From positions 62,001 through 126,000 of IMG/VR virus record IMGVR_UViG_3300001782_000005: DNA of 64,000 nucleotides. One strand, given 5' to 3'. Positions 1,144 to 55,972 of the stretch are shown here, one piece after another. The position numbers were made by a program, and so were the translations under genes. The first letter of the stretch is position 1; every line of letters starts with the position of its first letter. The notes beneath the pieces were generated by a model, which did no database searches, was not told where the DNA came from, and was given only the letters and a program-made list of their open reading frames with translations.

Positions 1144-2547
1144 TCACCTCCCCTCTTCTCTCACCAGACCTACATTTTCCATAAGTTCACTTATTTCACT
1201 ATAAAGTTGACGGTTTGATGTATGTAACAAAGTTAGACGGTGAGTAAAATACATTAGTGAACCAGAAGGAAGTTTCTCTATAATATCTCGATGTCTCCCT
1301 ATTCTGGTTTTACACTTATCTATAGCATTAGTTATAGACTCTAAATCTTTATCAATTATTTTGTGAGTATGTTGACGGCGAGAACATGAAGTACAAAGTT
1401 TTTCTCTAAAATCCACTATTGGTTGTGATTTACAATCTATACATATACAACTCGCACAATATGGAGAATCTGCTCCTTTTGGATTTCTCTTACAGTTTAT
1501 ACAAGCACAACCGCCACATATAATATTTTCTTGTGCAACTCGTGATGTATTACAAACTGGACATAGAAAAATCTCAACCACTTCCTCTTCTCTTCTCTCA
1601 GCCTCTGCTTCTTGTTCAGTTACCTGCTCCTCAGAAGTTTCAATTACTTCTTCACTTACCTCTTCACCCTCACTCTTATCTTCCTCTTCAGTATCTTCAT
1701 CCTGCTCAACAATCGCTTGTTCATCTTCTACAACCTGTGTCATATCTTGAGTTTGTGATATATCATGATCTGTAGATTCTTTATCTCTAATAGTCTCTAC
1801 ATATTGTAGAAGAATTATATCACGAAAGGAACTATACTCCATCGTTGGAACTTTTTCCCTAATTAAATAACTAATCAGGTCTTCTAAAACTCCAGAAGGA
1901 ACATTAAGAGAGTCTACTGCATTTATAAAATACTCAATATGACTCATTGTTGGAAGTCTAGACAGAGTCTTTATATCAAAACCTTCCTCTTCCCGCCTAA
2001 TCCCTTTTATGAGACTCTGAACTATTCTTTTAGGCATTGAGGTACCAGTAAATCTGTGAAGAAAATCGGCAGTCGGTGCTCCACTATTTTGCATAAGAGT
2101 GAAAGTATGTTCTTGTCTTCCTTCTGGTAACATTTTATAGAATTTCTCAAAATTTGGATCGTGCTTATCTGACCACTGCTTTATAACTCCCTTTAGATGG
2201 TAGTAAGCAATTTTTATAGACTCGATAACTACTTTGATATTCTGTTGCCAACCTGCCATATTTTCTCTAATCATTCTCTCCACCATAAGATTGTCATTTA
2301 TCTCTTCAACCGTAATTTCTACTTCACTATCTCCATCCAGCTCTCTAAGAGCTTGTAATCTATGGTGTCCAAAACAGATTTCGTATTTTCCATCTTCTAC
2401 TTTGCTGGGTCTAGCAATTATATAGTTATCCCAGAATTTATCATCAATAAAATTCTCTTTCAACTGTTCCACCTTTTCCCTATCTATGGGATAATCATCA
2501 AAATTTCTAAAAGGGTTAGGTAGCAAATCATTGACTCTAACTCGCAT
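1144..2547 (-). CDS. ParB/Srx-like N-terminal domain protein with acidic linker and Cys-rich repeats
   Basis: PNPFRN...IIARP...YEICFGHHRLQAL...REN ParB-like motifs; E/D-rich tract; tandem CxxC repeats. Confidence 0.75.
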   Translation of the reverse strand: MRVRVNDLLPNPFRNFDDYPIDREKVEQLKENFIDDKFWDNYIIARPSKVEDGKYEICFGHHRLQALRELDGDSEVEITVEEINDNLMVERMIRENMAGWQQNIKVVIESIKIAYYHLKGVIKQWSDKHDPNFEKFYKMLPEGRQEHTFTLMQNSGAPTADFLHRFTGTSMPKRIVQSLIKGIRREEEGFDIKTLSRLPTMSHIEYFINAVDSLNVPSGVLEDLISYLIREKVPTMEYSSFRDIILLQYVETIRDKESTDHDISQTQDMTQVVEDEQAIVEQDEDTEEEDKSEGEEVSEEVIETSEEQVTEQEAEAERREEEVVEIFLCPVCNTSRVAQENIICGGCACINCKRNPKGADSPYCASCICIDCKSQPIVDFREKLCTSCSRRQHTHKIIDKDLESITNAIDKCKTRIGRHRDIIEKLPSGSLMYFTHRLTLLHTSNRQLYSEISELMENVGLVREEGR

Positions 2548-8864: not shown

Positions 8865-8942
8865 TGGTCGGGTAGGACAGATTTGAACTGCCGACCCCCT
8901 GCTCCCAAGGCAGGTGCGCTAACCAGACTACGCTACTACCCG
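8865..8942 (-). tRNA. tRNA-Pro(UGG)
   Basis: Cloverleaf; anticodon arm CCTGC-CTTGGGA-GCAGG; TTCAAAT T-loop; encoded CCA. Confidence 0.95.
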
Positions 8943-14779: not shown

Positions 14780-14859
14780 TGGGGTGTCGGGTGGGAATCG
14801 AACCCACGCTCAACAGGGGCCACAACCCTGCGCCCTTATCCAATTCGGGCCACCGACAC
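14780..14859 (-). tRNA. tRNA-His(GUG)
   Basis: Acceptor GTGTCGG/CCGACAC, C73, CCA; anticodon arm CAGGG-TTGTGGC-CCCTG. Confidence 0.93.
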
Positions 14860-16661: not shown

Positions 16662-16736
16662 TGGACACTACGCCTGGATTCGAACCAGGGATCACGGATT
16701 TGCAATCCGTTGCCTTAACCTCTTGGCCACGTAGTG
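16662..16736 (-). tRNA. tRNA-Cys(GCA)
   Basis: Acceptor CACTACG/CGTAGTG, U73, CCA; ACGGA-TTGCAAA-TCCGT. Confidence 0.95.
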
Positions 16737-16740
16737 TATT

Positions 16741-16817
16741 TGGCACGCACGGAGGGACTCGAACCCCCAACCGCAGGTTTTGGAGACCTGTGCTCTTCGC
16801 AATTGAGCTACGTGCGC
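16741..16817 (-). tRNA. tRNA-Trp(CCA)
   Basis: CAGGT-CTCCAAA-ACCTG; TTCGAGT T-loop; CCA end. Confidence 0.93.
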
Positions 16818-19079: not shown

Positions 19080-22076
19080 TCACTCCTTCAATACTCCAAT
19101 AACATTAAAATATGCATCAAGCAGTTTCACAGATTCTGAAACATCATCTTCCTCATCTTTCGGTTTAATAAATTCCGATTCAATTGTTTCGTTGATATAT
19201 CTATTCTTTAAATCTATACAATCTGATTTTGTTGTTAAAAATTCAGAAAGGTTAATTGGTCCATCGTGAGCAATTAAACATGCTGTCTCCATTTCCCCAC
19301 ATCTCTGACCACCACGATGCTTCCTTCCTCCTAAAGGTTGCAGAGTTTTCTTTGCATATGATCCAATACCTCTAGCGGCTAATCTTGTCTCAGCAATATG
19401 CACCATCTTAAAGAAATAGATATAACCAGCGGCAACTTTATTTAGAAGCTTCTCTTTTGAGATTGGATCATAGATATCGTATTCAAACGAAGTTCCAGTT
19501 TTCTCCATTGCCTCTTTTACCATTTCCATTGAAACAGATTCAAATGGAGGTTGAATTAGTGATAGCCCTGCAATAAAATCTTTACTAATCACCTTTGGCA
19601 GTTGTTCTTCGAATTGCTTGTAATACCAATTCCCTTCTGTATTATCAATCACTTTTATATAGTGAAGTAAACTTTTCCTAACTTGTTTTTGACTACCCTC
19701 ATCAATCAAGTCAAAAAGTTTCTTCCTTAAATCAATAAAAGACATTGATAGGTGTAACTCAAATAATTGACCAATATTCATCCTAGAGATTATCCCAAGC
19801 GGATTTATACAAATATCAACATTCCTACCATCTGGAAGTTGAGGCATTTTCTCATGTGGAACTATCCTTGAAATAACTCCTTTATTCCCATGCCTATTTG
19901 CAATTTTATCTCCAGCCTCTATTGGTCGATAATAAATTCCGAACATCTCAACTCTTACACCGTTAACTGGTTCCCCCTTAACTTTATACCTACCAATATG
20001 AGAGAATTTGCTCAAATTTCGATCTCGAATAAATTGTTTAGCTTGCTCGACCGAAAGATGTTCATGTAAGACTTTCTGAAAATCTTTTTCCTTCTTTTGT
20101 TGTTTCTCGATCTTTTCTTCAATCCATTTCTTATACTCAGGTATTTCTTTATTCCACACATTTGCATAGACATTTGCATCAGTAATCCAAACTCTCTTTC
20201 TAGTGGTGAGTGGTGTCTCTTCTTCAAAAATTGAATAGAAGTCTAATCCTGCCGTAACTTCTTTCATTTTTGCATAAGGTTTTCCGGGAGCTATCGACTC
20301 CATTACATTAGGTAGTGGTTTATATACATTCTCGGTTAAACTTAGAAGTACTTTATTAGGCGGAATTGTAAACGATAAATCTCTATAATGGACAGATGTA
20401 AATACATCTTCTTTAACTAATCTATCAGATATAACTATTCCGTCCTCATAATTATAACCATAATAGGTCATAACTGCAGTTAATAAGTTTCGACCAAAAT
20501 TTATCTTACCATCTGTACAGAATCCGCTCTCAGCTAATATATCTCCTGCTTTAAATTTATCTCCAACTTTTACATAGATATTCATACCATCCATATTCTC
20601 AACATATATTTTCCTAAGGCCAATATCAAAGACATCAGCTTCATTATCATCATATTTAACAATCAAGAATTCTTGATTCAAAAATACTACTTCACCATCC
20701 TTTTTTGCTCTTCTAACAAATTGAGTAAAATCTGTATATAATCCCTCACATCCAGATTGAATTGTGGGAATATCAAATTCCCTGAGCATTATTGATTGTC
20801 TCATCTGAGATGCAGACATTTGTAATCTAGTCTGATCATTATGCTCGAGAAAAGGAACCATCGAAACTGGAATTGAAATGATTTGTTTATCCAAAATTTC
20901 TTCAGAAAACCGTAAATTATTATCTAATTTTACATTTGGAATCAAATTTTGAATAACTCCACAATTATCCCTGTCTGGAGTATCCACTGGACAAATCCTA
21001 CCAAACATACTTGGACAAATATCTCTCAAATGCTCAGGAACGTTCTCACGATTAAAACCACCTGGCCCAATTAAACTTATTCTTGATAAACGAGTCAATT
21101 CCTCAATCGGATTTATTGCAAAATCAAATTGAACAATATCCGACACATTACACTCTGAGAGGATTTGAGAAGAATTGATATTAAACTTTGGTTGCCTTGC
21201 TGTTCTATTCGACATACATAAATCAAAGACAGCTTTAGAAACTTTTGCTAAAATCATATATTCAGCACATCTAACTCTCTTATTTCTAAAATCAGTATCA
21301 TCATATACTACTCCAGCAATCGCATTGAATAATTCTTCTATTAGGGATCCAGTTGTGAAATATTCAGCAGACATTACATCAGCCTTAAGTATTAGATCAA
21401 GAGCATATACAAGATCCTCACCCTTTGATTTTGCGTTATAGTGTGAATAGTGTGCTCCGACCTCTCTTATAAAATCATCTTGTGTCCAACCAGCTGAATT
21501 TTCATAATAGAGTTTTAAATCCAGCATTAACTTATCATATATAGTATTACCACTTACTTCTAGAGCAGATAGTTTGAATCTTTGATTCAATTCATCCATT
21601 CCATAGTAAGCAAACATTATTAAAGCAAATGGAACTTTCTTCCCAAGAATACTCAACTTTACATGAGGTTGTTCTCTATCGTCAAAGACCATTATTGAGG
21701 CAACATTCGTCCTCAATTTGATTGATTTTCCTCTAGTAACAATAGGAATATCAAAGAGTTGAAATTGTGGAATCTTTTTCCTGCCTTTAATCATTATATA
21801 GTTTCGATCAATAAGTTTTGGTATTGCCATACTCAAGTCTATCTCAGAGTTTCCTTTCTGTAATTTAATAACCATGCTCTGCTTTAAGGTTTTGAATAAC
21901 TCACCTGAAGTAAATTTTGAGTCTTTAATTATAAAATCAGTTACTGTAAATCCCAGTTCTTCGGCAGGTTTTAAGATTTGCCTTACTTTCTCGGTTAATG
22001 AAGAGTATTCTCTCTCTCTGATAGAGAAAATATTACTCTCCTCATTAACCTTAAAATACGGATTGAGTATGTTCAA
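19080..22076 (-). CDS. rpoB: DNA-directed RNA polymerase beta-like subunit (set 1)
   Basis: GRICPVDTPD, PFLEHND..R.QM.ASQMRQ, GYNYEDG, GDKIANRHGNKG, SRMN.GQ, QP..G....GGQRCGEME. Confidence 0.95.
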   Translation of the reverse strand: MNILNPYFKVNEESNIFSIREREYSSLTEKVRQILKPAEELGFTVTDFIIKDSKFTSGELFKTLKQSMVIKLQKGNSEIDLSMAIPKLIDRNYIMIKGRKKIPQFQLFDIPIVTRGKSIKLRTNVASIMVFDDREQPHVKLSILGKKVPFALIMFAYYGMDELNQRFKLSALEVSGNTIYDKLMLDLKLYYENSAGWTQDDFIREVGAHYSHYNAKSKGEDLVYALDLILKADVMSAEYFTTGSLIEELFNAIAGVVYDDTDFRNKRVRCAEYMILAKVSKAVFDLCMSNRTARQPKFNINSSQILSECNVSDIVQFDFAINPIEELTRLSRISLIGPGGFNRENVPEHLRDICPSMFGRICPVDTPDRDNCGVIQNLIPNVKLDNNLRFSEEILDKQIISIPVSMVPFLEHNDQTRLQMSASQMRQSIMLREFDIPTIQSGCEGLYTDFTQFVRRAKKDGEVVFLNQEFLIVKYDDNEADVFDIGLRKIYVENMDGMNIYVKVGDKFKAGDILAESGFCTDGKINFGRNLLTAVMTYYGYNYEDGIVISDRLVKEDVFTSVHYRDLSFTIPPNKVLLSLTENVYKPLPNVMESIAPGKPYAKMKEVTAGLDFYSIFEEETPLTTRKRVWITDANVYANVWNKEIPEYKKWIEEKIEKQQKKEKDFQKVLHEHLSVEQAKQFIRDRNLSKFSHIGRYKVKGEPVNGVRVEMFGIYYRPIEAGDKIANRHGNKGVISRIVPHEKMPQLPDGRNVDICINPLGIISRMNIGQLFELHLSMSFIDLRKKLFDLIDEGSQKQVRKSLLHYIKVIDNTEGNWYYKQFEEQLPKVISKDFIAGLSLIQPPFESVSMEMVKEAMEKTGTSFEYDIYDPISKEKLLNKVAAGYIYFFKMVHIAETRLAARGIGSYAKKTLQPLGGRKHRGGQRCGEMETACLIAHDGPINLSEFLTTKSDCIDLKNRYINETIESEFIKPKDEEDDVSESVKLLDAYFNVIGVLKE

Positions 22077-22320
22077 CTTTTCCTCCAGTCTTTTTTATAA
22101 TCCATGTTACAAACCTTATTACATCTCCGTCTGTAAGATCACTCATATAGTTTCTATCAATTTTTCTTGAAATCCACCCATAAAGATCATGATCTTTTAA
22201 TAAATGAGCATTTAATCTTATGAATCTTAGTAATCTCCTTCTAGTAAATTGTCTAGTTTGACAAGACACATCAAACGAATATAGAAGTCCTTCCACCTTC
22301 ATCACAAGTCTCTCCCACAT
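22051..22320 (-). CDS. small hypothetical protein between beta' and beta
   Basis: Overlaps both flanking genes. Confidence 0.5.
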   Translation of the reverse strand: MWERLVMKVEGLLYSFDVSCQTRQFTRRRLLRFIRLNAHLLKDHDLYGWISRKIDRNYMSDLTDGDVIRFVTWIIKKTGGKVEHTQSVF

Positions 22321-25010
22321 AAAATCTTATCCATAACACCATAATATCTTCCTGGTTGTAAGATTCCTTTTAAGATATGCTGTTTTGGTCTTGAAAATGC
22401 TAAACCTAATAACCAACTTTCATAACTTGGAACTTTCTGCACCGAGTGATACTCAGGAGATAATTTTTCTCTACCTTCTATTAATCTCCACTTCCTAATT
22501 CCTTTCCACATCAACTGGGATACAACACATTCAAAATGAACATGATGAATATTTCTATTTGTGTTATAGACATCAAAGAGATCTGATACAATATCTACAT
22601 AATTCTTATTATCGAATTTATGTAGAAGTTTTGATGCACTCGCAAGATCACCAATGATATCCATCTGCCTTACAGCTTCATCATCTGCTTGTTCACCTTC
22701 TTTTACATGGGCTACTCCAGATGTGTGGAACGTTCTAAGAACCAATTGAGTATTACACTCCCCTAAACTTTGTGCAGCAATGACCCCAATGAATCTGCTA
22801 TTTAAAACTTTATATAATTCTCCATAACATTTCTTACATATTTTTGGACTTGTACAAAAGATTGGACTCCTTATGTGAATAACCTTTCCAACTAAATCTA
22901 AATAATTTTCCTTCGTTATCATCTCCAAAACACCATTATTATCATAATATCTATAAGTCAACATTCTAGCTTTCTTATTATCTTTTACGTAAACTAAAAG
23001 AAGATCATTTGTTCCACAATCTTCATGGTCTCCTATCTGAAGATTTGCACAAGCAAAAATTAGTTTTCTCGAAAGATATCCAGATGCTCCAGTATTAAGT
23101 GCGACATCAAGTAATCCTTTTCTACAACCATATGTAGAATTGAAAAATTCTTCCTCAGTCAGACCTTCTAAAAGACTATGTTTTATTGGAGTTGGAAGAA
23201 TCTGACCCCTAAAATTAGAGATAAACCCTCTAGTTAGAATTATCTGCCTGACTTGATCCCAACTACCTCTTGCTCCAGACTCAACCATATATGAATATTT
23301 AAAACTATCTTTAAGTGATCTTGTAGTCTCATCATTTGAGATCATCTCAATCTGATGTCTTATACTATGATCAGAATAGATTTCGTGCTTTATTTTTGTT
23401 AAATCTCCATTAAATGAGTCAAGAGACATGGTCGCACCAAATAAAGTTGAATACTTGAAACCAATAAATTTTATTCTATCAAGAACTTGCTTAATAATAT
23501 CAACAGGATATTTAGATTTAATATCATTGAGTATCTTCATCAATTTTCTTTTTCTGATTGCTTCGTTGACTAAAGGATAATCAACCGGCAGACACTCATT
23601 AAATATTTTAATTCCCTCACTAATTTTCTCTCCCTTAAATTCAACTTCATTTGATAAATCTAGAAAGCTATCACTTGTTAGAGCATATACTCCAAGAATT
23701 ATGTCTTGACTAGGGGTTGTCGCTAAACTCTCATTCGCAGGATTGCTTAAGTTTCTTGTTATTAGAAATTTCTCTCTAACTTCTTGTTTTGATTGCTCAG
23801 AGATTGGAATATAGACTGCCATCTGGTCACCATCAAAATCAGCATTAAAACCAGGGCAAGCAAGTGGATGAATCTTAATAACATTGTCTAGAGATATCTT
23901 AACATTAAAACCCATCATACTTAATCTGTGTAACGATGGTTGCCTATTTAATAAACAAACCTCATCTTTGGCAATTTCTTCACAAACTCGGTATAGGACT
24001 GGTGACTTCGTTTCTATACAATCATCAACAAAATCAATTGCATCATTTAATAACTTAAATCTACCAATCTCAATGAGTTTCTTTGATATCTGCAGTTTAA
24101 ATAATTCAAGAAACATTAGGTAAGGCAAAACACACTCATCTAAATTCAATACCGGATCAGGAATTATCACTGCCCGACCAGAAAAGTCAATTCTTTTTCC
24201 TAAAATATTTCCCCTAATAAGACCTTCTTTCTTTGCTAATTTAGAGATAATATGTGAATATAACTCATTTACATCTTTCTGAATTTGAGTAAAGTAACTA
24301 TAGAATAGTTTCTTATCTCTATGTATATCAACTATTGTATCTCTCATAATTTCTTTTTTCGTCAATATCTGAATATAATATCTATTTATCTGATCAACCA
24401 CTTGGTTGTTTCTTTCAATATTTTTCGCTGCTGGTCTAAGATCAGGGGGCAACACAAGCACATTATGTATGAACATCTTATCCAAATTATCTCGAATAAC
24501 TTTCCACTCCAGAATTCCATCCTCAACAAACATATGGGAGAGATCCCCTATTAATTTTCCAATTGCCTCTATCTTCTCAAATTTTTCTGCATCTTTCGGA
24601 ACCGCAGATTCACTAGTGGCTACTCCATATTCATCTTCTCGTACAAATAAAATACTTTGTTCATTCTTCATTAAATCATCCAGAAGTCCTTTTACTTTTG
24701 AACCTCCAATATCAACTATTAACTCATAGAAAATCGGATTGACAACTGGAAATGGAAGAACTATTCTAGCAAATCTCCTTCTCCTCTCATCACTATTAAC
24801 AATATCTACCTCACAAATAGCACAAGTTCCACCAGCACCAGAAATTCCATAATACGTGCCACACTGGCATGTATAATTCCTAACTGGTCCAAAGATTTGT
24901 TCAGAGAATAAACCCTTCGGATGGAACTTCTTCTTGCTCATCATTTTCGTTGAACTTACTTGTTTTAGCTCCTCCGAAAACTTATTAATGTCAAGAAGAC
25001 TTGGCATCAT
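22302..25010 (-). CDS. rpoC: DNA-directed RNA polymerase beta'-like subunit (set 1)
   Basis: GLFSEQIFGP + CQCG..CAIC, GKRIDFSGRAVI, NRQPSLH, NADFDGDQM, SGYLSRKL, TQLVLRTFHTSG. Confidence 0.96.
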   Translation of the reverse strand: MMPSLLDINKFSEELKQVSSTKMMSKKKFHPKGLFSEQIFGPVRNYTCQCGTYYGISGAGGTCAICEVDIVNSDERRRRFARIVLPFPVVNPIFYELIVDIGGSKVKGLLDDLMKNEQSILFVREDEYGVATSESAVPKDAEKFEKIEAIGKLIGDLSHMFVEDGILEWKVIRDNLDKMFIHNVLVLPPDLRPAAKNIERNNQVVDQINRYYIQILTKKEIMRDTIVDIHRDKKLFYSYFTQIQKDVNELYSHIISKLAKKEGLIRGNILGKRIDFSGRAVIIPDPVLNLDECVLPYLMFLELFKLQISKKLIEIGRFKLLNDAIDFVDDCIETKSPVLYRVCEEIAKDEVCLLNRQPSLHRLSMMGFNVKISLDNVIKIHPLACPGFNADFDGDQMAVYIPISEQSKQEVREKFLITRNLSNPANESLATTPSQDIILGVYALTSDSFLDLSNEVEFKGEKISEGIKIFNECLPVDYPLVNEAIRKRKLMKILNDIKSKYPVDIIKQVLDRIKFIGFKYSTLFGATMSLDSFNGDLTKIKHEIYSDHSIRHQIEMISNDETTRSLKDSFKYSYMVESGARGSWDQVRQIILTRGFISNFRGQILPTPIKHSLLEGLTEEEFFNSTYGCRKGLLDVALNTGASGYLSRKLIFACANLQIGDHEDCGTNDLLLVYVKDNKKARMLTYRYYDNNGVLEMITKENYLDLVGKVIHIRSPIFCTSPKICKKCYGELYKVLNSRFIGVIAAQSLGECNTQLVLRTFHTSGVAHVKEGEQADDEAVRQMDIIGDLASASKLLHKFDNKNYVDIVSDLFDVYNTNRNIHHVHFECVVSQLMWKGIRKWRLIEGREKLSPEYHSVQKVPSYESWLLGLAFSRPKQHILKGILQPGRYYGVMDKILCGRDL

Positions 25011-25335
25011 ATTCCTCCCAACTAAAATCTAACCATGGTTTGAAATAACAATCGTCGAGATAGAAATTACATATTACCATCTCAATAAATTGCCTAAATT
25101 TTTCGTCGTATTTCTGCCTCTTAATCTTCTCATCTAAGCAAAGTTCTCCAGTATCAGGATTCGCATTTGGATGCTTTGCATTAATGATCACCTTACTGAT
25201 ATAACCATCTACAAGGTAAATTTTATAATTAGTTACAATGTAATCATTATTAATTCTAGAAATTCTAAATGTTTCATCCTTGTAGAAAAATCTTCCCGGA
25301 ACAAGATACGTATTATAATCTAATATCTGTTCCAT
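24991..25335 (-). CDS. minimal UBC/E2-like protein
   Basis: HPNANPDTGELCLD matches the E2 signature HPN(I)...GxICLD including the catalytic Cys. Confidence 0.65.
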   Translation of the reverse strand: MEQILDYNTYLVPGRFFYKDETFRISRINNDYIVTNYKIYLVDGYISKVIINAKHPNANPDTGELCLDEKIKRQKYDEKFRQFIEMVICNFYLDDCYFKPWLDFSWEEYDAKSS

Positions 25336-26204
25336 TACGCACCACCAGTAACAAATAGTAACTGAATATAATTTTCCTCAACTCTAATCACAAAATTTCT
25401 TTCAAACGGATAGAGATTCATTACTGATTTTAAATTATCAACTACAGCCTGAGGGGTATTTAATTGGCCTCTGGGAACAATCTTGCAACCAACATGTCTT
25501 TCCCTCTCACCCAAGCAAACTTTAACATCTCTCTCTTGATTTATTTCCATAATTGGGCGAAAACTTTGCTCTAACTTTAGCAATCTAGAATCATCTATAT
25601 CAGGTTCATAAATTAAATCTGTATCTCTACTTTTGTCCTGAATATCTCTACTAATTGCTTTTGCATGATGATCTAAACTTATTTCATATATTTCTTGGTT
25701 AGCTATCCATTGATTAATGATACTATTACTATCAATCAAGATAGCAAGTTGTAATGCAGCATTTTTAAGATCGTTTTTCTTTAAAGGTAGGTTATATCTG
25801 CCGTCATAATTAAAAGGATAGTTTATATTTTTTCGACAGTCGATAATAAGGTATCGGCCAGAAATAGATGCTCGAATATCTATTATATTGCCTCGGTCAT
25901 AGACATAGTCTCTGCAATCTATAACCAGGTCACAGGTAGGAAGTTCGGTTTCTCCTTCTATAAATTTTTCTCTGGATATTGCCATTATAATATCTTCATT
26001 AAAAGACTTCAAGTGATTATATAAAGCATTTACCTTTAAATCTCCAATGTCTCGTTTTGTATAAATCGAATTTCTAATATTTTTCTCTCGTACAATATCT
26101 GGATCAATTAAAATTAGTTCTTTTATGTTATCAGTACTAGCCAAACTTTCAGCTAGATAACCGCCTAAAGATCCAATTCCAAGGATTGCGATTCTTTGTT
26201 TCAC
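25335..26204 (-). CDS. ThiF/E1-like protein (divergent)
   Basis: ILGIGSLG, LIDPDIV..KN, K, VIDC; lacks the canonical NLxRQ arginine. Confidence 0.8.
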   Translation of the reverse strand: MKQRIAILGIGSLGGYLAESLASTDNIKELILIDPDIVREKNIRNSIYTKRDIGDLKVNALYNHLKSFNEDIIMAISREKFIEGETELPTCDLVIDCRDYVYDRGNIIDIRASISGRYLIIDCRKNINYPFNYDGRYNLPLKKNDLKNAALQLAILIDSNSIINQWIANQEIYEISLDHHAKAISRDIQDKSRDTDLIYEPDIDDSRLLKLEQSFRPIMEINQERDVKVCLGERERHVGCKIVPRGQLNTPQAVVDNLKSVMNLYPFERNFVIRVEENYIQLLFVTGGA

Positions 26205-26242
26205 GCTCGATCCTTTATTGTTTGTTCTTCATTTAGAGAATA

Positions 26243-26273
26243 GTGACCGAGATCAATAAATGACCTCGGTCAC
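26243..26273. terminator. intergenic hairpin
   Basis: GTGACCGAG...CTCGGTCAC inverted repeat. Confidence 0.5.
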
Positions 26274-26276
26274 CAG

Positions 26277-26801: not shown

Positions 26802-27269
26802 TTATCCCTTCCGGCCTGCGGCCTTTAGGAATTCGAGATTGTCCCCTTCTTTCAGCACATAGTTGCCATCGACAGTCTTTCCATTGACAACTCCCTGTGC
26901 CATTCGGTCTATGTTCAAGACTTCCCTGAGAAACTCAGAGACAGCACCAACTGTCTTTCCACAGACGCTGAAGTCTCCAGCGGCAGCACCACATGACACA
27001 CGAATCGTTGTAGTAGTCTTATCACCAAATTTTGCAGTTGGTTTGGTGAGAATACTCTGCATGCTAAATTCAGCCTTGGTAAGTTTGTCATCCTTTGGTG
27101 CAGCTTTGGGAGCAGCAGCCGCCGTAACTGGACCCTGTTTCTCAAGGATAAGGTCAATAACAGTATCTTTGGGTTTCTTGGAGTACCCAACACAACCCAA
27201 ATTCTTTGCCATTGCTCGAAGTTCTTTCACAGTCTTCTCTGCCAGTTGTTCTCTAGTAAAACTAGCCAT
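26802..27269 (-). CDS. ubiquitin-like (beta-grasp) protein with N-terminal Rho-N/HeH-like domain
   Basis: TVKELRAMAKNLG..GYSKK.K N-domain; GKTV...VNG...VLKEGDNLEF and C-terminal AAGRKG. Confidence 0.85.
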   Translation of the reverse strand: MASFTREQLAEKTVKELRAMAKNLGCVGYSKKPKDTVIDLILEKQGPVTAAAAPKAAPKDDKLTKAEFSMQSILTKPTAKFGDKTTTTIRVSCGAAAGDFSVCGKTVGAVSEFLREVLNIDRMAQGVVNGKTVDGNYVLKEGDNLEFLKAAGRKG

Positions 27270-27282
27270 TCCGATCTCCTTT

Positions 27283-27984
27283 TTAATTCTCTAGTGGTTT
27301 TCTAGTTTTAGGATCAGCTCTCATTGATAGAACATCGAAATACACTTCAGAGTAATTGGCATTATTCTTCACAACAGTATTGTAGAATGCAAAACACATA
27401 AATGTTGCAACTCCTAAATTTGTAAAGAATAATTGTGGTTCTGATTGGGATAACTCCTCGCAACTCATCTCACCCGGTGTTCTATCTATTGGATGTTCAA
27501 TTTCCGGATGATAATCACTCAATGACGGAGTTATGTTTCTACCCCCCTTTCTCACAAAGATTTGGACATTGCCATCAGTGTACTCATTCCCTCCTGATAT
27601 AACAATAATGTCATTGAGTGTTTTGGTATGATCTGAGATAATTTTTCTCGTCTTATGATTATCAACGCATACGAAGACTATATCTCCCGACTTAATGAGC
27701 GACTCTACGTTACTACGGTCAACATAATCATCAAATGCAGAGTAATTTAATTCTGTGTATTTCTCTTGAAATTCGGTGGCCTTAACTATTGATTTCTTGC
27801 CACCAGCGATCAAAAACTCCTGTCTATCTCGGTTCTTTGGTTCGAAAGTATCTCCATCTATGAAGGTAATCCTAGCTTCAAATCCGTTTCCATAATTTAG
27901 AAATCTAGAGAGTTTATCAGCTAGGACTGTACCAACTCCACCAATACCTATGACTTTAATCAGTAACTCAGTCATCATCACCAC
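27283..27984 (-). CDS. E1/ThiF-family Ubl-activating enzyme
   Basis: VIGIGGVG, IDGD.FEPKNRDRQ, CVDN..TR, SGGN, SCEE (candidate catalytic Cys), QLFFTN. Confidence 0.9.
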   Translation of the reverse strand: MVMMTELLIKVIGIGGVGTVLADKLSRFLNYGNGFEARITFIDGDTFEPKNRDRQEFLIAGGKKSIVKATEFQEKYTELNYSAFDDYVDRSNVESLIKSGDIVFVCVDNHKTRKIISDHTKTLNDIIVISGGNEYTDGNVQIFVRKGGRNITPSLSDYHPEIEHPIDRTPGEMSCEELSQSEPQLFFTNLGVATFMCFAFYNTVVKNNANYSEVYFDVLSMRADPKTRKPLEN

Positions 27985-28984
27985 ACCCCTCCTCTCTGGT
28001 ATTTAACGGGAGTTGGTGTTGGTAGAATCCTTCTTGCCCAGTATAGAAGCCACCGCCGCCTTCATCCGGTTCAAGACCATCAAGAGGATCGTACTCTTCT
28101 GGATCGAAGACGTAGCCTCCGCCGTATCTATACCAATAGGGGAGCCAGGATCCGTGGGGTAACTCACTGGGGTCGGCAGGGGATCGAACCCTACCTCGCT
28201 GAGTTGATCCAGGTGACCAAGTATAGACCACCGGGGTTCTCTTCTCAACAAACTCCATCCATGTAGGTTCAAAAGGGACTTCAGCAACATAAAATCCTTT
28301 TTGAGATTTTGAATCTTTCTCATATACTCTTACACCATTCTTTATTTCAAAGGATGGGCGAAATATGTGCTGATGATAGTTACAATAATCAACAGATTCA
28401 GCCCCTTCTACATAATCATTGGTATCAACTATAAAGCGCATCCCATTCACTACAATAGATGTAGAGATAGTGAGAAGACCTTTACTTAAGTCACCGACAG
28501 TTATATGTAAACCGTCAAAATGCTTTTCATCAGAGTCATCAATGCCAGAATGGAAAGCTCCAAAACCGGCATGACTATGAATTGTACACATTAAGATATA
28601 ACCTTGTGCTTGCCAAGGAGACTCTCTCTTATAATCTACAGAACCTCCTGAGACTTCTTGAAAAGGTACTTGAATTTTAAAATCTCTCTTTTTCTCATTA
28701 TAGTGAAGCAAAGCAATAGCTTCACTTTTATGCTCATCGTAAACTTTTCTGAAGAAACTAACAATTCTTTTAAAATCCTCTCCCGGAACTTTTGGTATAT
28801 CTAATGTCGCATAGGACTTCACATGATTTAAATGCGGAATACCACTTGCTGGAACTAATGCATCAAGTATACCCAATTTCTTTCTAATATAGATGCCATT
28901 ACCTGCAACCACATAGAAAATATCATCATCGGGCAACTCTTGAGTTCCATCTGCTACGAAGACGTTGAACATGCACACCTCCAA
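27968..28984 (-). CDS. JAB/MPN+ metalloisopeptidase
   Basis: SEA...TIHSHAGFGAFHSGIDDSDE (E...HxH...S..D). Confidence 0.9.
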   Translation of the reverse strand: MEVCMFNVFVADGTQELPDDDIFYVVAGNGIYIRKKLGILDALVPASGIPHLNHVKSYATLDIPKVPGEDFKRIVSFFRKVYDEHKSEAIALLHYNEKKRDFKIQVPFQEVSGGSVDYKRESPWQAQGYILMCTIHSHAGFGAFHSGIDDSDEKHFDGLHITVGDLSKGLLTISTSIVVNGMRFIVDTNDYVEGAESVDYCNYHQHIFRPSFEIKNGVRVYEKDSKSQKGFYVAEVPFEPTWMEFVEKRTPVVYTWSPGSTQRGRVRSPADPSELPHGSWLPYWYRYGGGYVFDPEEYDPLDGLEPDEGGGGFYTGQEGFYQHQLPLNTREEGCGDDD

Positions 28985-31458
28985 TCTGCCACCATCCTTA
29001 GACCTTGTCTATCTGGTACTTCTATATAACCACCATGCATATTAGGATAGACATATTTAACTGAAAATCTATCAAGTTGTCTCTGTGTAAAACGAGGTTG
29101 CAGAAGACCCCACCAAATAGTCCTCTCATCTGGGTATACAGTTCCGGTAGTTATATATCTATGCATATACGCAGTCGGGTATTTTCTCAATCTCCCATAA
29201 CCATCTTTCATCAGCATATATGGAGACCATCTAGAAGACATAGTGTACATAAGAAAATCTCCCATCTGATGTGCAATTCTAGTTGCTGGTGGCGCAATCT
29301 GCACCTGATTCCACAATCTAGAAGATGGAGCCAAATATGAAAATTTAGAGAGATAGTGTTCATGTGCCCAAAGTGTACAACGATTCGAGCAGAGCATAAG
29401 AGGAACATCTGTTCCCGTATCAGTTATAAAACCAATGATTTGATTTACATCTTTCTTGGGGAATTTACTAATTCCCGCAACATTAGCTCTTAGTTTTGTG
29501 CCTGCTATTAAACCATTATACTCCTCAATAATCTTTCGAATTTTTCCAATAAATACCTGACCCCGACCTAAATCTGCATAGTTTATTGTTGCTATATCAT
29601 CATCTTTACCTCTTGCAGTTATCTTAATTATTCTATTTTCATCAATACTTATACCTATTATCTCTCGTATTATGGTCATATCTTCGGGTTTATTCCAATC
29701 TACAAAGACTACTTTATCTCCAATCTTGAAGTTCAAATCAATGTCATAACTTGGAAGATTGAACTCTCCATCCTTTACTAAATTCTCAAATGCATAATCA
29801 GCATTGAAGGAAAATTCATTAGATCTCGTGCCAACATAGAGAATACCAGTACCCTTCATTATCCTATGATCCCCATTGATAGAAGTAAACATCAACGGAC
29901 CAACTCGAAAAATGGGATGATGAACTGAAGTATCCTCATCCATCAACTTATACCGACTCTCAATAGTTTCAAAGGTTTCGTTTATCTCATAGCTAGATTC
30001 TCGATCTTTAAACCTTACACTTAAAAGACCTCTGTCATTTACATCAATTCCTTTAAGTTCGGCAGGTCTCCCAGTATAAAGGAGTATATCGGAAGGTCTG
30101 CTTATCAGAGTATACTCACGACCAACTTCCATCTCAATACCATAAAGGTTTATCTTCTGGTTAAAAATCTTCAAATCCAGGACGTCAGCAAAATAATAGT
30201 CTATACCTAACTTAACTTCGATATTGCCATCCATGGCAGTTCTGATTTCATTTACTTTTCGGTAACTCCTCATGGGGTATGCCATTTCAACAATATCTCC
30301 AGCTCTTATTGTAAGCCCATTCTTTAACTCCAATGAATCTATTGTATTTGTTTTAACTAATTTCTTAACTAAGGTATCCTTCATCTTCTCCGTTAATAAT
30401 TTTTCAGTCAATTGATCCTCCTCATCTCTAAGTATAAACGTATGAGGTGGATAACCAGGCATACCCTTAAATCCATTAACCCAATAAGTTTTACCTTCAA
30501 GTTCAAATTTATCTCCTATAGAAAGTAAATTTTCCCCTAAAGATATACTCTCACATGGATCCATATATACCTTGGCCTCATCTGTCTGAATTGGTTCAGT
30601 AAATAATTCAGCCAATTTGTAGAAATCAAGAGTTCTGCTATAAGTCGACTGCCTTTTAAGACTTGCTACTTTTGTTATCTCCTCCTTCAAAGTTCTTGCA
30701 TGATGTTTCCAATCTACTTTAAATACAAACATTGGGTCCTTATAAGAATAATACTGCCAGGTTAGAAAGTCAGACACTTCCCCAATATCTTCGTACATCT
30801 TATATGCATGGAGGTAATCAGTATTGAAACTATTGTTCCAGAACCTATTAAGAGCTTTATTGCAAACTGATTGAGTATTATCTCCATAGGATGAACCTTC
30901 TCCCAGACAAACATTGAAACTATGATCAATGTTTAGCAGATTTGGAATCAAAAGATAATCTACTATGCTGGTTATTGGATGTATCCTATAAAATACTCTA
31001 AGTGCATATAACTCAAAGAATTTGGTAATGGACATTATATAAACGACATATGGGAAAGCTAAAGTTACTCTATATGGTCTCTTTCCATCCCTATACTGTT
31101 TTAATACTTCATCAGTATAACCAAAATAGTCCAACTTTCCGGTCTTCCTCAATTTCTCGATGTTATATTCCAAACTCATATCGAGGCGAATTGTTCTAAC
31201 ACAGGGAGGGTCTTCAATAACTACGACCCTCCCACCGTTGCTAGTAGGTTGTAAAAAACGACAATTCTGAGGAAGAATTTCGTCTGGCCGGCGATTAGCC
31301 ATTCTAGTTATCAAACGGGTAATTAATTCACTTGTATTTAACAACCTTTGCCTTATTGTTGGTGTCGCTTTTGCTTCATCTTCACCAGAGTCAATTTCAG
31401 ATAGGCAAAGACTAGAAAATTTCTCACTTATAATTATCTCGTTTATCTCACGTTTCAT
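28954..31458 (-). CDS. large protein with N-terminal prokaryotic E2 (family D-like) domain
   Basis: LAFPY...PNLLNIDHSFNVCLG...FWNNSFN; ~550-aa unknown C-terminal region. Confidence 0.75.
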   Translation of the reverse strand: MKREINEIIISEKFSSLCLSEIDSGEDEAKATPTIRQRLLNTSELITRLITRMANRRPDEILPQNCRFLQPTSNGGRVVVIEDPPCVRTIRLDMSLEYNIEKLRKTGKLDYFGYTDEVLKQYRDGKRPYRVTLAFPYVVYIMSITKFFELYALRVFYRIHPITSIVDYLLIPNLLNIDHSFNVCLGEGSSYGDNTQSVCNKALNRFWNNSFNTDYLHAYKMYEDIGEVSDFLTWQYYSYKDPMFVFKVDWKHHARTLKEEITKVASLKRQSTYSRTLDFYKLAELFTEPIQTDEAKVYMDPCESISLGENLLSIGDKFELEGKTYWVNGFKGMPGYPPHTFILRDEEDQLTEKLLTEKMKDTLVKKLVKTNTIDSLELKNGLTIRAGDIVEMAYPMRSYRKVNEIRTAMDGNIEVKLGIDYYFADVLDLKIFNQKINLYGIEMEVGREYTLISRPSDILLYTGRPAELKGIDVNDRGLLSVRFKDRESSYEINETFETIESRYKLMDEDTSVHHPIFRVGPLMFTSINGDHRIMKGTGILYVGTRSNEFSFNADYAFENLVKDGEFNLPSYDIDLNFKIGDKVVFVDWNKPEDMTIIREIIGISIDENRIIKITARGKDDDIATINYADLGRGQVFIGKIRKIIEEYNGLIAGTKLRANVAGISKFPKKDVNQIIGFITDTGTDVPLMLCSNRCTLWAHEHYLSKFSYLAPSSRLWNQVQIAPPATRIAHQMGDFLMYTMSSRWSPYMLMKDGYGRLRKYPTAYMHRYITTGTVYPDERTIWWGLLQPRFTQRQLDRFSVKYVYPNMHGGYIEVPDRQGLRMVADWRCACSTSS

Positions 31459-51877: not shown

Positions 51878-54800
51878 TTATCTCCCTGAAAGCATCATTG
51901 CTGTAAAGTAGCTGTCTAACACTTCTCCAGCTGGATTAATTTTCGGTTCCTTATATCCAGCACTTCCAGTTTGGACAATCTCAGATATAATTTCATTTTT
52001 TGTAACATGATCATCACTTAGAGGACCCATCATCTCAGCAAGAAGAGAAGGACAATTATAAGAAATGAGAGAATATGTTTCTGCCTCTCCCATTCTCTGT
52101 CCACCCCCTCTTCTTTTTCCAGCAGTTGGTTGAAGAGTCTTGGGTTTCACTGGCCCAGTACTTCTACTATGAATTTTCAAATCTCCAATATGCTCAAGTT
52201 TATAGATATACATATAACCAACTGGAACATCTGATCTAGTCCTAGTATTATATTCTGGTATAAATAGTTTATATCCAGGTTTTAGATTTAACATCTTAAG
52301 AACGGCTTGAATTGCTTGATGACTTGGTGCCTTAAACGGTGGAATTACAATAGGCACTGCCTTCTTCTGATTTATCTGATTCAACATTTGTTTATATCTA
52401 GTTGGTGATAATTTTAAAATACCGTTGGCTAAAGAATTAGAATATTCATTATTCTTCGATGTATCTAATCTATTCATAACTCTTTTAACTAGAGCTGCTA
52501 CCTGATCTTGCTTCTTTATCTCAAGGAATCTCCTAGCTAATTCTCTAGATACTAAACCACAATATAACTCATATAATTGACCTAAATTCATTCTTCCAAG
52601 TATTCCAAGAGGATTTAAGATAACTTCAACTCTCTCACCCCAAGGAGTTCTTGGCATCTCATTAGCTGGTTCAACTAAAGATACAATTCCTTTATTGCCA
52701 AACCTATTACATAGTTTATCCCCAAGACCTATCCTCAATTCCTGCTCAATCTTAAACCTTACTAAAATTCCCTTAATTGTCTCGCCCCTTACAGAAAACT
52801 TTTCTTTTGGGGCTACTCCATATTTTCTCCTTGTCCTTGAGATCAAATTCTTCAATTGCGGAAATTTTGTCTCACCAATATTTGAGAATACCTCAATTTC
52901 AACAACTCTACCACCAGGACTTTTAAGAGTATAAATTCCTCCAGCTATAGCCTCACCCTCATCTTCTTCATACCCAAGCAATTCTTCAATTTCTCCAATA
53001 GTTCTCCTAAGTAGAGGTTCTCCTTTCTTTGTATCTTGACCGATCCCGACTATACTAATCAAACGATCATCTTTTGAAACTAGAGTGTCTTCAGTTAAAC
53101 CATGCAGAGAAGTTAACTTATCGCCTGATATTAAACTATCACTTATGACTATTCCGTCCTCAAAGTTATAACCTTTATAAGGCATCATTGCGGTTAGAAG
53201 ACTTCTGCCCAAGCACATTGTTCCGCCAGAAAGAGCACTACCTTCAGCAACAATTTGATTCTTTTTAACAGTCTGACCAATTTTCACAGTAGGCTTAAAT
53301 ACACTAAGAGTATCCTTACTCGTCCCAGACCTGAGATGAGCAGGACTAAGATCAATTGATTGTGCTCTGCCCGCACTACAATCAATCATCATCCTATCCG
53401 ACGTAATAGATTTAACTTTCCCTGCACACGGAGACCTTTTCACATAAACGTCTGATAGAACATTAGGTAAGACGGATTCATAACCAGACTGAACATCGGG
53501 TGGTTCGGGGTTCTTTAATGGCAATGCCTGTCTAGATTGATTAGCTGCCATCATAACCCTAACTCCATCATTATTCTCAATGAATGGAATCATAGCTGTA
53601 GAAACTGATAACATACCGGAGTACTCAGTATTAGTAGCAGGTTTTGTTTGAAATAAACCTCTAGCTGAAGTAATAAGAGCATTTACTGTTAGATGTTGTG
53701 TAATACCAATACTATCACTCTCCGGAGTATCTAACGGATCAATATTGCCGAAATATGATCTATGTACATTAAGAGCGGCTCCCTGCATTGCTCGTTTGTC
53801 CGGAATACCCCCAATATTTCTTCCTATTGGAGTGGTCCTTGTCATAACCGCCATCTCTTCAATTGGATTAACATACTCCATATCAACAACAATTTGAGAG
53901 TTTATAAAATCGCTCAATAGTTTACCTGGGACAATTCTAAGAGTAGCTTTAGTGTTTCCAGCAAGAACTTGTTCCTTATACTCAGTATATGCAGCTAATA
54001 CCTGTTTTAAAGCGAAATGTGCAAGAACTTCTGATGCTCTTATCCTCTGTTGTGATAAATCATTTCTATCTTCTACATAACCCTCTATAACCTTTGTGGC
54101 CATATATTTCATAATCATATAGAGATCTGTAGGTAATTGCTTATTCATAAGTACTTGTTTTGCAATCGGATCAACAATATTCTCAACATTAGACATGATA
54201 TGAAATGTAGAAGCAATGCGACCAGTCATCGCAATAATTAAACTATTCCAATATTGTTTGTCGGGAAACGGGGCTTCTATATTATATAAATAAGGTTTAG
54301 CTTGAATCAGAGATTGACAAAGTTCTTCTTTGAGTTCATTATTAGTACCATCAAAAAATACAGCTTGAGTTTCATTAACCCTTACACCAAATTCAGTTTT
54401 CTTAATTACCTTTGTTTCCTCAATCCTATACTTTATACCATATAATTTTAAAGTCTGCTCAAAACCAAATGCAAAGGATAAAACTGCAAGGAATGGAAGC
54501 CGATAGGTCATAAATATTTCCAAATAATTTTTCTTTCTACCCCGTTTACTATAAATACGAAATATCGAATAAATACTTTCAAACTTAGATTCGTATGGTT
54601 TTGGAAATGTAATCGGATTCTGAATCATTTGATTGATTAAACATTTTCTCCTGCCGTGAATACTAAAAGTTCCTGAGACAGGGTCAATCTTGGGCATCTC
54701 CATCTCGATAGTATGTATATTTCCATACTTATCTTCCAATACTACTATCATAATACTAACATCTGATTTATCTAATTCTCCCTTCCTGGTTGGTTTGTCA

Positions 54801-55972
54801 ACTATCTTTATAGATTTAATTTTTATAGGTATTTCTTTCTTCTCAAGAGTTCTAAAGACGTTCGTCATATCTTTTCTTAAATTTGTCGAGAAATCTACCT
54901 GTCTCTTCTCAAAAAGATGTTCTGGAGATTTTTTATCAACCATTTTTGGAACATTAGCTGTTTGAACAACAATATCATCAGTTGTACTAACAGTTGGTTT
55001 TGGTTTCAAAACTTCGTCAATAAATGCTTTATCAATAGCTTTCAGAGCTATAATTCTCTTTTCTCTTGGAATAGCTTTTGCAATCTTTTTGGATCTTTCA
55101 ATATCTCCACTAGTATTATAAAGAATCGAAGCAGTAGCAACTTCTTCAACTTCATCTGGTTTAATTTCTTTACTAACAACTTTTTCAGCAGTCTGTTTAT
55201 CTTTATTAAAGAAAGCAGCAATAGAGTCTTTTACTTTAGCTTGGTTCTTAGCAGGTATATGTTTAGCAACTTTAGTCATAACTTCTTCGGTTGCTGCCTT
55301 TATATTCTCTTCCTCTTCTTTTTCCAGATCAATTGATTTGATATTTCTAATATATGTAAGCATCCTTTGAAGATTGAAATCTCTATTTCTAACTAAGAGT
55401 CTATATTTTGTGCTTGATTCATCAATGGTTCCATATAGGAGATGATCAAAAGTTGCACCTTCAGATTTCATCATCTGAAGGATTGGAAAAATCTTCCTAT
55501 TACGAAGCGAATTAAACTCCTTTGTAGCATCCACAGTATATAAGAGAATTTTTAAATAATCTGGAGAAAAACTATTAAGAGTTTTAAATAAAACATTCTT
55601 TAAAAGAAAACCAGCTCTCTGTCTATAATTAATTGGTTTATAAACAGTATCAATCGCAACTAAATATTGTGATAAATCATAAAAAAGATTTCTATTCTGT
55701 GGAAACTTCATATTTGTTGAATATGCCATTAAACCTAATGTCTTATATGCTTTTCTAACTTCTCCAACTAATCTCGTTCTAGGAATCTTAGTAACCGGAA
55801 CAAGGACATATCGAACATCAACTCGCCTTATTCCCAATTTTGGATAATCATCTAAAAAATTTGAATTCTCACTAAAATATATAAGTAGAGTTTTCTTCTT
55901 ATCCATAGGAAATCGAAGGCCAGTAGCAACTTGACTATATAACTTAAGTTTATCAACTCTAAAAATAGCCAT
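51878..55972 (-). CDS. rpoB: DNA-directed RNA polymerase beta-like subunit (set 2) with ~350-aa N-terminal extension
   Basis: GNIDPLDTPE, PFIENND..R.MM.ANQSRQ, GYNFEDG, GDKLCNRFGNKG, GRMNLGQ, GGQRMGEAE. Confidence 0.95.
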   Translation of the reverse strand: MAIFRVDKLKLYSQVATGLRFPMDKKKTLLIYFSENSNFLDDYPKLGIRRVDVRYVLVPVTKIPRTRLVGEVRKAYKTLGLMAYSTNMKFPQNRNLFYDLSQYLVAIDTVYKPINYRQRAGFLLKNVLFKTLNSFSPDYLKILLYTVDATKEFNSLRNRKIFPILQMMKSEGATFDHLLYGTIDESSTKYRLLVRNRDFNLQRMLTYIRNIKSIDLEKEEEENIKAATEEVMTKVAKHIPAKNQAKVKDSIAAFFNKDKQTAEKVVSKEIKPDEVEEVATASILYNTSGDIERSKKIAKAIPREKRIIALKAIDKAFIDEVLKPKPTVSTTDDIVVQTANVPKMVDKKSPEHLFEKRQVDFSTNLRKDMTNVFRTLEKKEIPIKIKSIKIVDKPTRKGELDKSDVSIMIVVLEDKYGNIHTIEMEMPKIDPVSGTFSIHGRRKCLINQMIQNPITFPKPYESKFESIYSIFRIYSKRGRKKNYLEIFMTYRLPFLAVLSFAFGFEQTLKLYGIKYRIEETKVIKKTEFGVRVNETQAVFFDGTNNELKEELCQSLIQAKPYLYNIEAPFPDKQYWNSLIIAMTGRIASTFHIMSNVENIVDPIAKQVLMNKQLPTDLYMIMKYMATKVIEGYVEDRNDLSQQRIRASEVLAHFALKQVLAAYTEYKEQVLAGNTKATLRIVPGKLLSDFINSQIVVDMEYVNPIEEMAVMTRTTPIGRNIGGIPDKRAMQGAALNVHRSYFGNIDPLDTPESDSIGITQHLTVNALITSARGLFQTKPATNTEYSGMLSVSTAMIPFIENNDGVRVMMAANQSRQALPLKNPEPPDVQSGYESVLPNVLSDVYVKRSPCAGKVKSITSDRMMIDCSAGRAQSIDLSPAHLRSGTSKDTLSVFKPTVKIGQTVKKNQIVAEGSALSGGTMCLGRSLLTAMMPYKGYNFEDGIVISDSLISGDKLTSLHGLTEDTLVSKDDRLISIVGIGQDTKKGEPLLRRTIGEIEELLGYEEDEGEAIAGGIYTLKSPGGRVVEIEVFSNIGETKFPQLKNLISRTRRKYGVAPKEKFSVRGETIKGILVRFKIEQELRIGLGDKLCNRFGNKGIVSLVEPANEMPRTPWGERVEVILNPLGILGRMNLGQLYELYCGLVSRELARRFLEIKKQDQVAALVKRVMNRLDTSKNNEYSNSLANGILKLSPTRYKQMLNQINQKKAVPIVIPPFKAPSHQAIQAVLKMLNLKPGYKLFIPEYNTRTRSDVPVGYMYIYKLEHIGDLKIHSRSTGPVKPKTLQPTAGKRRGGGQRMGEAETYSLISYNCPSLLAEMMGPLSDDHVTKNEIISEIVQTGSAGYKEPKINPAGEVLDSYFTAMMLSGR

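Follow-up and report, generated by a model that had tools for sequence, protein, structure and literature searches.

A coupled E1-like/E2-like gene pair upstream of RNA polymerase genes in uncultivated marine jumbo phages: candidate second branch of a ubiquitin-like conjugation cassette

Two adjacent genes, here designated E1b and E2b, are located immediately upstream of an RNA polymerase β' gene in a 64-kb window (the whole stretch of DNA analysed), which is part of a complete virus record of 277,131 bp with terminal repeats and a G+C content of 36.7%. E1b (25335..26204, minus strand) encodes a 289-aa protein of the ThiF/E1 superfamily, in which an adenylation (Rossmann) domain is joined to a small domain at the C-terminus. 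It has a GTG start codon preceded by an AAGGA Shine-Dalgarno-like site. E2b (24991..25335, minus strand) encodes a protein of 114 aa with a predicted minimal UBC fold. The E1b stop codon and the E2b start codon share base 25335 (GCG TAA TG G), and the end of E2b overlaps the start of the β' gene by 20 nt (24991..25010, minus strand). The coordinates, the TAATG junction, the 20-nt overlap and the E2b motif reported in an initial annotation of the window were all correct when re-checked. In our view, there is about an even chance that 24991..26204 is a coupled two-gene second branch of a composite conjugation cassette for ubiquitin-like proteins (Ubls) in a clade of uncultivated marine jumbo phages. 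The same sequence is present in DNA runs of marine sediment and seawater metagenomes, the only runs in which it was found; none of the RNA-seq runs searched contained it.

The adenylation domain of E1b comprises residues 1 to ~215 (25560..26204, minus strand). Pfam ThiF matches above threshold (50.4 bits versus a cut-off of 28.1), although only across residues 2-101. Besides this profile match, the protein has the Rossmann-type E1 fold, the Gly-rich loop and the Mg-binding Asp of the ThiF/E1 superfamily, and its top Foldseek matches include PaaA, ThiF and MccB. Conservation was analysed over 86 sequences. In 82 or more of these, each of the following is retained: the Gly-rich loop (GxGxxGG), Asp34, Asp36, Asn42, Lys57, Asp96, Arg98, Asp99 and Arg104; residues 96-99 form a DCRD motif. 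This pattern points to an active nucleotide-binding site. Because the nucleotide-binding residues are retained so widely, E1b does not have the appearance of a pseudo-enzyme. The initial annotation had suggested either a second conjugation branch or a pseudo-E1 scaffold. The former agrees with the presence of a second E1-like/E2-like pair beside a first module (see below), whereas the latter is at odds with the preserved ATP site.

The same annotation had noted that this ThiF protein lacks the usual NxxRQ arginine and CxxC motifs, and both observations hold. Where the canonical arginine would be expected (Asp34+11), E1b has Asn45; KNxxNS is the consensus of the family, which lacks the arginine finger throughout. 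It might be speculated that the invariant Arg98 compensates for this loss. None of the five cysteines is part of a CxxC motif, and the zinc site of MoeB/ThiF-type proteins with its two CxxC motifs is missing. A conserved catalytic cysteine as in canonical thioester-forming E1s was not found either. Cys97 belongs to the DCxD motif and is not at a catalytic position. Cys123, the sole candidate, is invariant in the first 41 E1b sequences. In the wider set, 11 loci with an E2b have Phe at position 123, three loci that have lost E2b have Ser or Thr, and Ala also occurs at this position. Since the 11 loci with Phe keep E2b, Cys123 was dropped as a universal catalytic residue.

The C-terminal domain of E1b (residues 222-289; 25338..25541, minus strand) has a predicted beta-grasp-like order of strand-strand-helix-strand-strand. 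In the AlphaFold2 model, DSSP assigns strands to residues 227-232, 237-243, 271-276 and 279-284 and a helix to residues 251-262; values of the predicted local distance difference test (pLDDT) range from 91 to 97. Judged by this model, the domain is probably a small beta-grasp. No sequence homology was detectable to UblA (the Ubl candidate of the first module), to Ubls in the PDB or to Pfam Ubl families. The last four residues before the stop codon, at the free C-terminus, are Thr-Gly-[Ala/Gly/Ser]-Ala (25338..25349, minus strand), and the common ending is ELLPETGAA. Gly287 and Ala289, which 84 of 86 sequences retain, correspond, as far as conservation is concerned, to the conserved small C-terminal residue of beta-grasp Ubls. 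At each of the four terminal positions every synonymous codon is used, indicating selection on the peptide and not on an overlapping ribosome-binding site. For the same reason, the possibility that the conserved tail merely reflects the ribosome-binding site of E2b was ruled out.

Two distant loci, L118 and L119 (β' 38-39% identical), have a split E1b. Here, E1b itself is reduced to the Rossmann domain (175 or 189 aa), and the next ORF, a separate one of 95 or 86 aa, ends in PIPSSA or PIVNSA, i.e. in Pro-x-x-x-Ser-Ala (L118:2786-3614, L119:2048-2868). These free ORFs share their position and the Pro(-5)...Ala end with the ELLPETGAA tail. Significant similarity between them and the E1b tail domain was not found. 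Such an organization resembles the usual one of an E1 with a free modifier. A terminal Ala as a substrate of E1 and E2 has a precedent: in type II CBASS (an anti-phage signaling system based on cyclic oligonucleotides), it is a whole enzyme that becomes conjugated, and conservation of its terminal Gly/Ala is confined to cases with both Cap2 and Cap3 (PMC10097602).

E2b contains HPNANPDTGELCLD. Its active-site-like motif His55-Pro56-Asn57 ... Cys66, HPNANPDTGELC, is encoded by 25138..25173 (minus strand), with the His55 codon at 25171..25173 and the Cys66 codon at 25138..25140. An exhaustive HMMER search over 1.84 billion representatives yielded 131 clusters of relatives, nearly all of them 100-160 aa long; where the sources provide a name, it is only 'hypothetical protein'. 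P0038 and P0135, which are long and repetitive, lack HPN and look spurious, were excluded from the alignments. Among 122 aligned sequences, Pro13, His55 and Cys66 are the sole invariant positions, Pro56 and Asn57 reach a conservation of 90% or more, and the consensus reads HPN-x-[DN]-P-x-[TN]-x-x-[FLY]-C. As His and Cys are invariant and Pro and Asn nearly so despite a mean column identity of only 16%, the motif is not a product of chance. Likewise, H-x-N and Cys are kept in all 64 E2b copies from distinct viral loci, usually with a spacing of eight residues.

The AlphaFold2 model of E2b, built on the family alignment, has a pLDDT of 94.1. According to this model, E2b is a beta-meander followed by the HPN loop, Cys66 and one crossover helix. 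Three helices of classical E2s, one at the N-terminus and two at the C-terminus, are missing from it. E2b thus combines two attributes of the UBC/E2 superfamily, a predicted core fold and a catalytic-type Cys preceded by HPN. The proposal that the 114-aa ORF with its near-UBC signature folds as a UBC protein is consistent with this prediction. Foldseek comparison of the model with the PDB gave no significant match (best E 0.28); ~40 of the top 50 entries were E2 proteins or ubiquitin E2 variants (UEVs). Its nearest neighbours in the ESM Atlas are two viral clusters of hypothetical proteins with template-modelling (TM) scores of 0.71-0.74, followed by a eukaryotic UQ_con cluster at TM 0.55; a feature search of the same atlas gave no result. 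When the family profile is aligned with solved E2s, its HPN..C falls on theirs, although the E value of 0.1 is not significant, and profile searches against PDB sequences found nothing significant. No model from Pfam (E up to 1), PHROGs, NCBIfam or PADLOC matches E2b. UQ_con (PF00179) was matched by one of the 122 relatives, at 0.017, which does not amount to a significant match, and none of the families Prok-E2_A-E is among the 25 listed of the 31 families matched by E2b relatives.

Several variants of E2b were observed. A tandem double E2b (P0091, L089:3546-4259) comprises a first copy with HPN and Val instead of Cys and an intact second copy, which recalls the UEV-UBC pairing of Mms2-Ubc13. 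The E2b proteins of L118 and L119 are 241-244 aa long with the E2 domain at the C-terminus. One sub-clade (L073:8443-8865, L077:1653-2057, L078:1672-2022) has a coiled-coil protein of a small helical family (see below) in place of E2b; E1b position 123 is Ser or Thr there, and the tail is retained as ETGGA.

E1b and E2b are tightly coupled in most of the family. Among 63 distinct loci, the two genes overlap by 1 or 4 nt in 41, and their junction is within 8 nt in 57. In L060, a 198-aa ORF resembling an HNH-type homing endonuclease (L060:1044-1640) splits E1b from E2b and breaks the usual overlap. The 20-nt overlap between E2b and β' is, in contrast, a stop loss private to this genome and not a feature of the family. 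The nearest relatives read TGG GAG GAG TAA T(A)ATG and the window TGG GAG GAA TAT GAT G..; the change from TAAT to TATG removed the E2b stop codon, added six codons (YDAKSS) and generated the overlap. Over the 63 loci, the gap between E2b and β' has a median of 410 nt with one or two small genes inside, and a spacing of at most 21 nt is limited to seven loci. Translational coupling of the pair to β', in the form initially suggested, is therefore not supported. In most relatives, this gap (L001:10326-10535 and its counterpart in 60 loci) is occupied by one small helical protein family of 65-140 aa, often in two copies. The family is retained even in L109, whose record contains no Ubl cassette. 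A search in six frames of the whole genome under study revealed no match, so that the family has been lost here.

Upstream of E1b, a perfect 14-bp stem-loop (26242..26274, minus strand) is present in the 72-nt spacer that separates E1b from a gene for a 157-aa protein. It lies just past the stop codon of this gene and 38 nt before the E1b start. The 96-nt stretch containing it has a minimum free energy of -25.9 kcal/mol (z -4.2). When only the 130 nt upstream of E1b were folded in the relatives, the best 55-nt fold reached -15 kcal/mol or lower in 39 of 63, formed by unrelated GC-rich sequences. The predicted stem-loop may be a transcription-unit boundary or terminator, a processing site or a signal for the phage polymerase. 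Scans for sigma-70 promoters and terminators performed no better than on shuffled sequence.

The β' gene downstream of E2b (set 1; 22302..25010, minus strand, first ATG at 25010) encodes 902 aa with Pfam Rpb1 domains 1-5. It is followed by the β gene of the same set (19080..22076, minus strand; 998 aa), whose homologue in relatives has Pfam Rpb2 domains; the synteny is conserved. Viral loci were collected from IMG/VR with the E1b alignment (78 loci) and then independently with β', to avoid ascertainment through E1b. The gene order E2a-JAB-E1a-UblA-(0-3 small genes)-E1b-E2b-(0-2 small genes)-β'-β was found in ~75 of the 78 loci, with E1b identities down to 30%. This bears out the expectation that the order E1b-E2b-β' is conserved in related phages. 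In the β' scan, 26 of the 29 loci that have this polymerase type and at least 3 kb of visible upstream DNA carry E1b. E2b was found by profile in 25 of these 26, and in the other, L117, a divergent E2b was recognized by eye.

The three remaining loci, L109 and L111 (β' 56% identical) and L120, are without the E1b-E2b pair in the visible upstream DNA. L109 and L111 retain the backbone SbcCD - radical SAM - WYL_2 - small helical protein - β'; over the 5 kb upstream, neither shows a cassette, and the 43.7-kb record of L109 contains no E1b, E2b, ThiF or JAB anywhere. Since no cassette is seen upstream of β' genes as closely related as these, the polymerase does not seem to need it. In L118 and L119, the first module is located 2.5-5.5 kb further upstream, and E1b and E2b remain beside β'. 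In L115, E1b-E2b directly follows SbcCD, with no first module in the 3.4 kb upstream.

On present data, the E1b family is found almost only in viruses. Among 185,579 bacterial and archaeal species genomes (one each), the sole E1b relative resides on one 10-kb contig of a metagenome-assembled genome; the other copies are on viral contigs. BLAST searches of 50,697 GenBank phage records with the region and with E2b yielded no match, and with E1b only weak ThiF-level matches in crAss-like and other phages.

The first module consists of four genes upstream of E1b. E2a (28954..31458, minus strand; 834 aa) has an N-terminal Prok-E2_D domain with invariant Asn176 and Cys184. This Pfam family is matched by 23 of 28 E2a homologues, at best with 8.2e-7. 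Fused to it are ~580 further residues of no assigned function. The JAB/JAMM peptidase (27968..28984, minus strand; Pfam Prok-JAB 8.8e-5) has an intact E..HxH..S..D motif, and its Glu88, His136, His138, Ser146 and Asp149 are invariant in 65 sequences. It resembles PRTRC protein A at 4.8e-10, which is below the curated cut-off. E1a (27283..27984, minus strand; Pfam ThiF 3e-18) looks like a canonical E1 with NxxRQ, Lys63, Asp108 and an invariant Cys175 (63 sequences). It is similar over its full length to the PRTRC ThiF protein (1.8e-12, again below the curated cut-off). UblA (26802..27269, minus strand) combines a Rho_N (SAP-like) N-terminus (Pfam Rho_N 4e-6) with a beta-grasp domain that gives weak ThiS/TGS matches, and ends with Gly-x-Lys-Gly. 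The terminal Gly is invariant in five sequences. Of 62 homologues, 44 end with GxKG and 14 with KGC; the extra Cys after Gly in the latter implies processing. The Rho_N/SAP-like domain is joined through an Ala/Pro-rich linker. Such domains are typical nucleic-acid-binding modules, and a DNA- or RNA-binding ubiquitin-like modifier, if UblA is one, would be unusual.

Other features of the window are listed for completeness. All its large genes are on one strand. It holds two β'/β gene sets, the second and larger of which (51878..59317, minus strand; β' 1002 aa, β 1364 aa) has no adjoining E1 or E2 genes. An 89-aa ORF, p89 (22051..22320, minus strand), overlaps the end of β' and the start of β of set 1, is conserved in closer relatives and may encode a small polymerase subunit. 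A weak ParB_N match was found at 1144..2547. The only four tRNA genes of the genome all fall in the window on the minus strand: Pro-TGG (8865..8942), His-GTG (14780..14859), Cys-GCA (16662..16736) and Trp-CCA (16741..16817).

How the two proteins might work as a second branch of the cassette can be outlined as follows. An E1b dimer would adenylate a C-terminal carboxylate. Most likely, this would be the C-terminal tail of the other E1b subunit; like the CD-NTases of type II CBASS, E1b would then carry its own modifier. Alternatively, it might be the Gly end of UblA. E1b would hand the modifier straight to E2b, where it would be bound to Cys66 as a thioester before E2b moves it onto a lysine of a target. 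The JAB peptidase of the cassette might process or reverse the mark. A more specific version, to which we concede a slim chance, holds that a virus-borne, self-contained cascade, made up of an E1-Ubl fusion ending in Ala and a miniature HPN-type E2, is kept beside the genes of the multisubunit RNA polymerase of the phage because it tags this polymerase or the host transcription machinery during takeover.

Other explanations distribute the roles differently. E1a and E1b could form a split heterodimeric E1, with adenylation and thioester formation assigned to E1a and with E1b as a catalytically weakened partner similar to SAE1 or APPBP1. The beta-grasp of E1b would then be a ubiquitin-fold domain that recruits E2b, and UblA would be the sole modifier, routed to both E2a and E2b. 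This would account for the NxxRQ motif and invariant Cys175 of E1a and for the lack of the arginine and of a universal cysteine in E1b, and in canonical E1s it is indeed a C-terminal ubiquitin-fold domain that docks the E2. Furthermore, both modules are co-present (the loci found with E1b; L118 and L119, 2.5-5.5 kb apart) or co-absent (L109) in every checkable record. We nevertheless consider a split E1, although a good rival, rather unlikely. The Gly-rich loop, Asp34, Lys57 and Asp96 of E1b are intact, and inactive E1 domains usually lose such ATP-site residues. The last four residues of E1b are under strict selection at the protein level, and we know of no ubiquitin-fold domain with a conserved extreme C-terminus. 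In addition, L115 has E1b-E2b but no first module in the 3.4 kb upstream. If, on the other hand, the pair acted on the phage's own RNA polymerase by tagging β'/β or aiding its assembly, its location by the β' gene would be explained. E1b-E2b lies directly upstream of β'-β in ~75 of 78 loci found with E1b and in 26 of 29 found with β', this adjacency holds in the distant lineages in which the first module is 2.5-5.5 kb away, and the position-conserved hairpin sets E1b apart from the upstream genes. Gene position is the sole support for this idea, and we consider it quite unlikely. Co-orientation with the polymerase is not specific, since the whole 64-kb window runs in one direction; the overlap with β' is the private stop loss described above, and most relatives have one or two intervening small genes. 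Moreover, L109 and L111 keep the backbone and β' without a cassette in the 5 kb upstream, and in L109 there is none in 43.7 kb.

E1b might also be mainly a substrate. Conjugation of E1b by E1a together with E2b or E2a, as with the cGAS-like enzyme of type II CBASS, would switch on its own nucleotide-dependent activity. The conserved terminal Ala with its CBASS precedent (PMC10097602), the seemingly full competence of E1a and the retention of the E1b tail in loci that lost E2b are compatible with such a role. The tight E1b/E2b coupling, however, fits an enzyme pair better, and no second catalytic motif beyond the adenylation site is evident in E1b, so that we regard this role as improbable. Finally, the pair may not conjugate proteins but perform other E1-type chemistry, i.e. 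sulfur transfer or adenylation of peptides or metabolites as known from ThiF, MccB and PaaA, with E2b serving as a non-catalytic UEV/RWD-like adaptor. These three proteins are among the top Foldseek matches of E1b, a radical SAM gene is nearby, and the fold scores of E2b are modest. We find this very hard to reconcile with the invariant HPN...Cys of E2b: this motif is the hallmark of active E2s, and UEV and RWD domains are without the Cys. The same cassette also encodes a second E2, a JAB peptidase and a Ubl with a terminal Gly, and neither a precursor-peptide gene nor a RiPP recognition element (RRE)/peptide-clamp domain was seen.

The kinds of components, E1, E2, Ubl and JAB, are already known from Bil, Bub, CBASS and PRTRC. 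New are the viral nature of the system, the presence of two E1s and two E2s, the unannotated family of minimal HPN-containing E2b proteins and the Ala-ended tail domain of E1b. Type II CBASS combines Cap2, an E1-E2 fusion, and Cap3, a JAB peptidase, with the C-terminus of the CD-NTase as modifier. In the phage, E1b and E2b are separate genes, E2b is far smaller and has the classical HPN, E1b lacks a universal catalytic cysteine, and the cassette has no CD-NTase or effector and is not located in a bacterial defence island. Of the PADLOC models, only those of Cap2-type E1s match cassette proteins, and only E1a and E1b; a defence system was not recognized. Bil (BilABCD) and Bub (6E) have the same component list as the phage cassette: Ubl, E2, JAB and E1. 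Their Ubl is pre-processed to expose Gly, comparable to UblA with its extra Cys in 14 of 62 copies, and the Bub E1 lacks a catalytic cysteine, as E1b lacks a universal one. BubB and the Bil E1 are among the structural matches of the pair. In contrast to both systems, the phage cassette has two E1s and two E2s, no DUF6527/BubE and a viral context, and E2b would use Cys, whereas Bub uses oxyesters.

With eukaryotic and archaeal UBC-type E2s, E2b shares the HPN before Cys, 8 residues apart; in UbcH5, this spacing is 7. The beta-meander, active-site loop and crossover helix of the model superpose on residues ~30-140 of these E2s. Unlike them, E2b has no significant UQ_con match and lacks the N-terminal helix that binds E1 and E3 as well as helices 3 and 4, but has an additional strand at its N-terminus and a C-terminal CYFxPW block, which is conserved. 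PRTRC, a ParB-related, ThiF-related cassette of plasmids and integrative elements, resembles the neighbouring first module (E1a and JAB) with scores below the curated cut-offs; we know of nothing like E1b or E2b in it. Similarly, the likeness to the Prok-E2_D operons (Iyer et al., 2006) concerns the Prok-E2_D domain of E2a in the first module and not E1b/E2b. The classical HPN motif is absent from at least one bacterial E2-like family, group 6d of Iyer. Ubiquitin-like enzymes in phages are not mentioned in a 2021 comparative survey of jumbo phages, a 2026 review or other literature searched, with incomplete coverage. The nearest report is on Asgard-archaeal viruses of deep-sea sediment, for which three ThiF-like genes were described.

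To our knowledge, prokaryotic ubiquitin-like conjugation has so far been found as bacterial anti-phage defence (CBASS, Bil and Bub). Here, the machinery is located in a phage, and it forms a conserved core block in a clade of marine jumbo phages that is widespread. E2b condenses the classical HPN-Cys signature into ~110 residues and is close to a minimal E2, and E1b hints at an E1 with a modifier of its own. If enzymatically active, the two proteins would form a compact system for the study of E1-to-E2 transfer without an E1 cysteine, and the question would arise as to what the phage tags: its own polymerase, host proteins or components of host defence. Should a cascade that tags the transcription machinery prove true, it would represent the first case of a phage that controls transcription in a ubiquitin-like manner, and viruses would be a reservoir of E2s with the classical motif.

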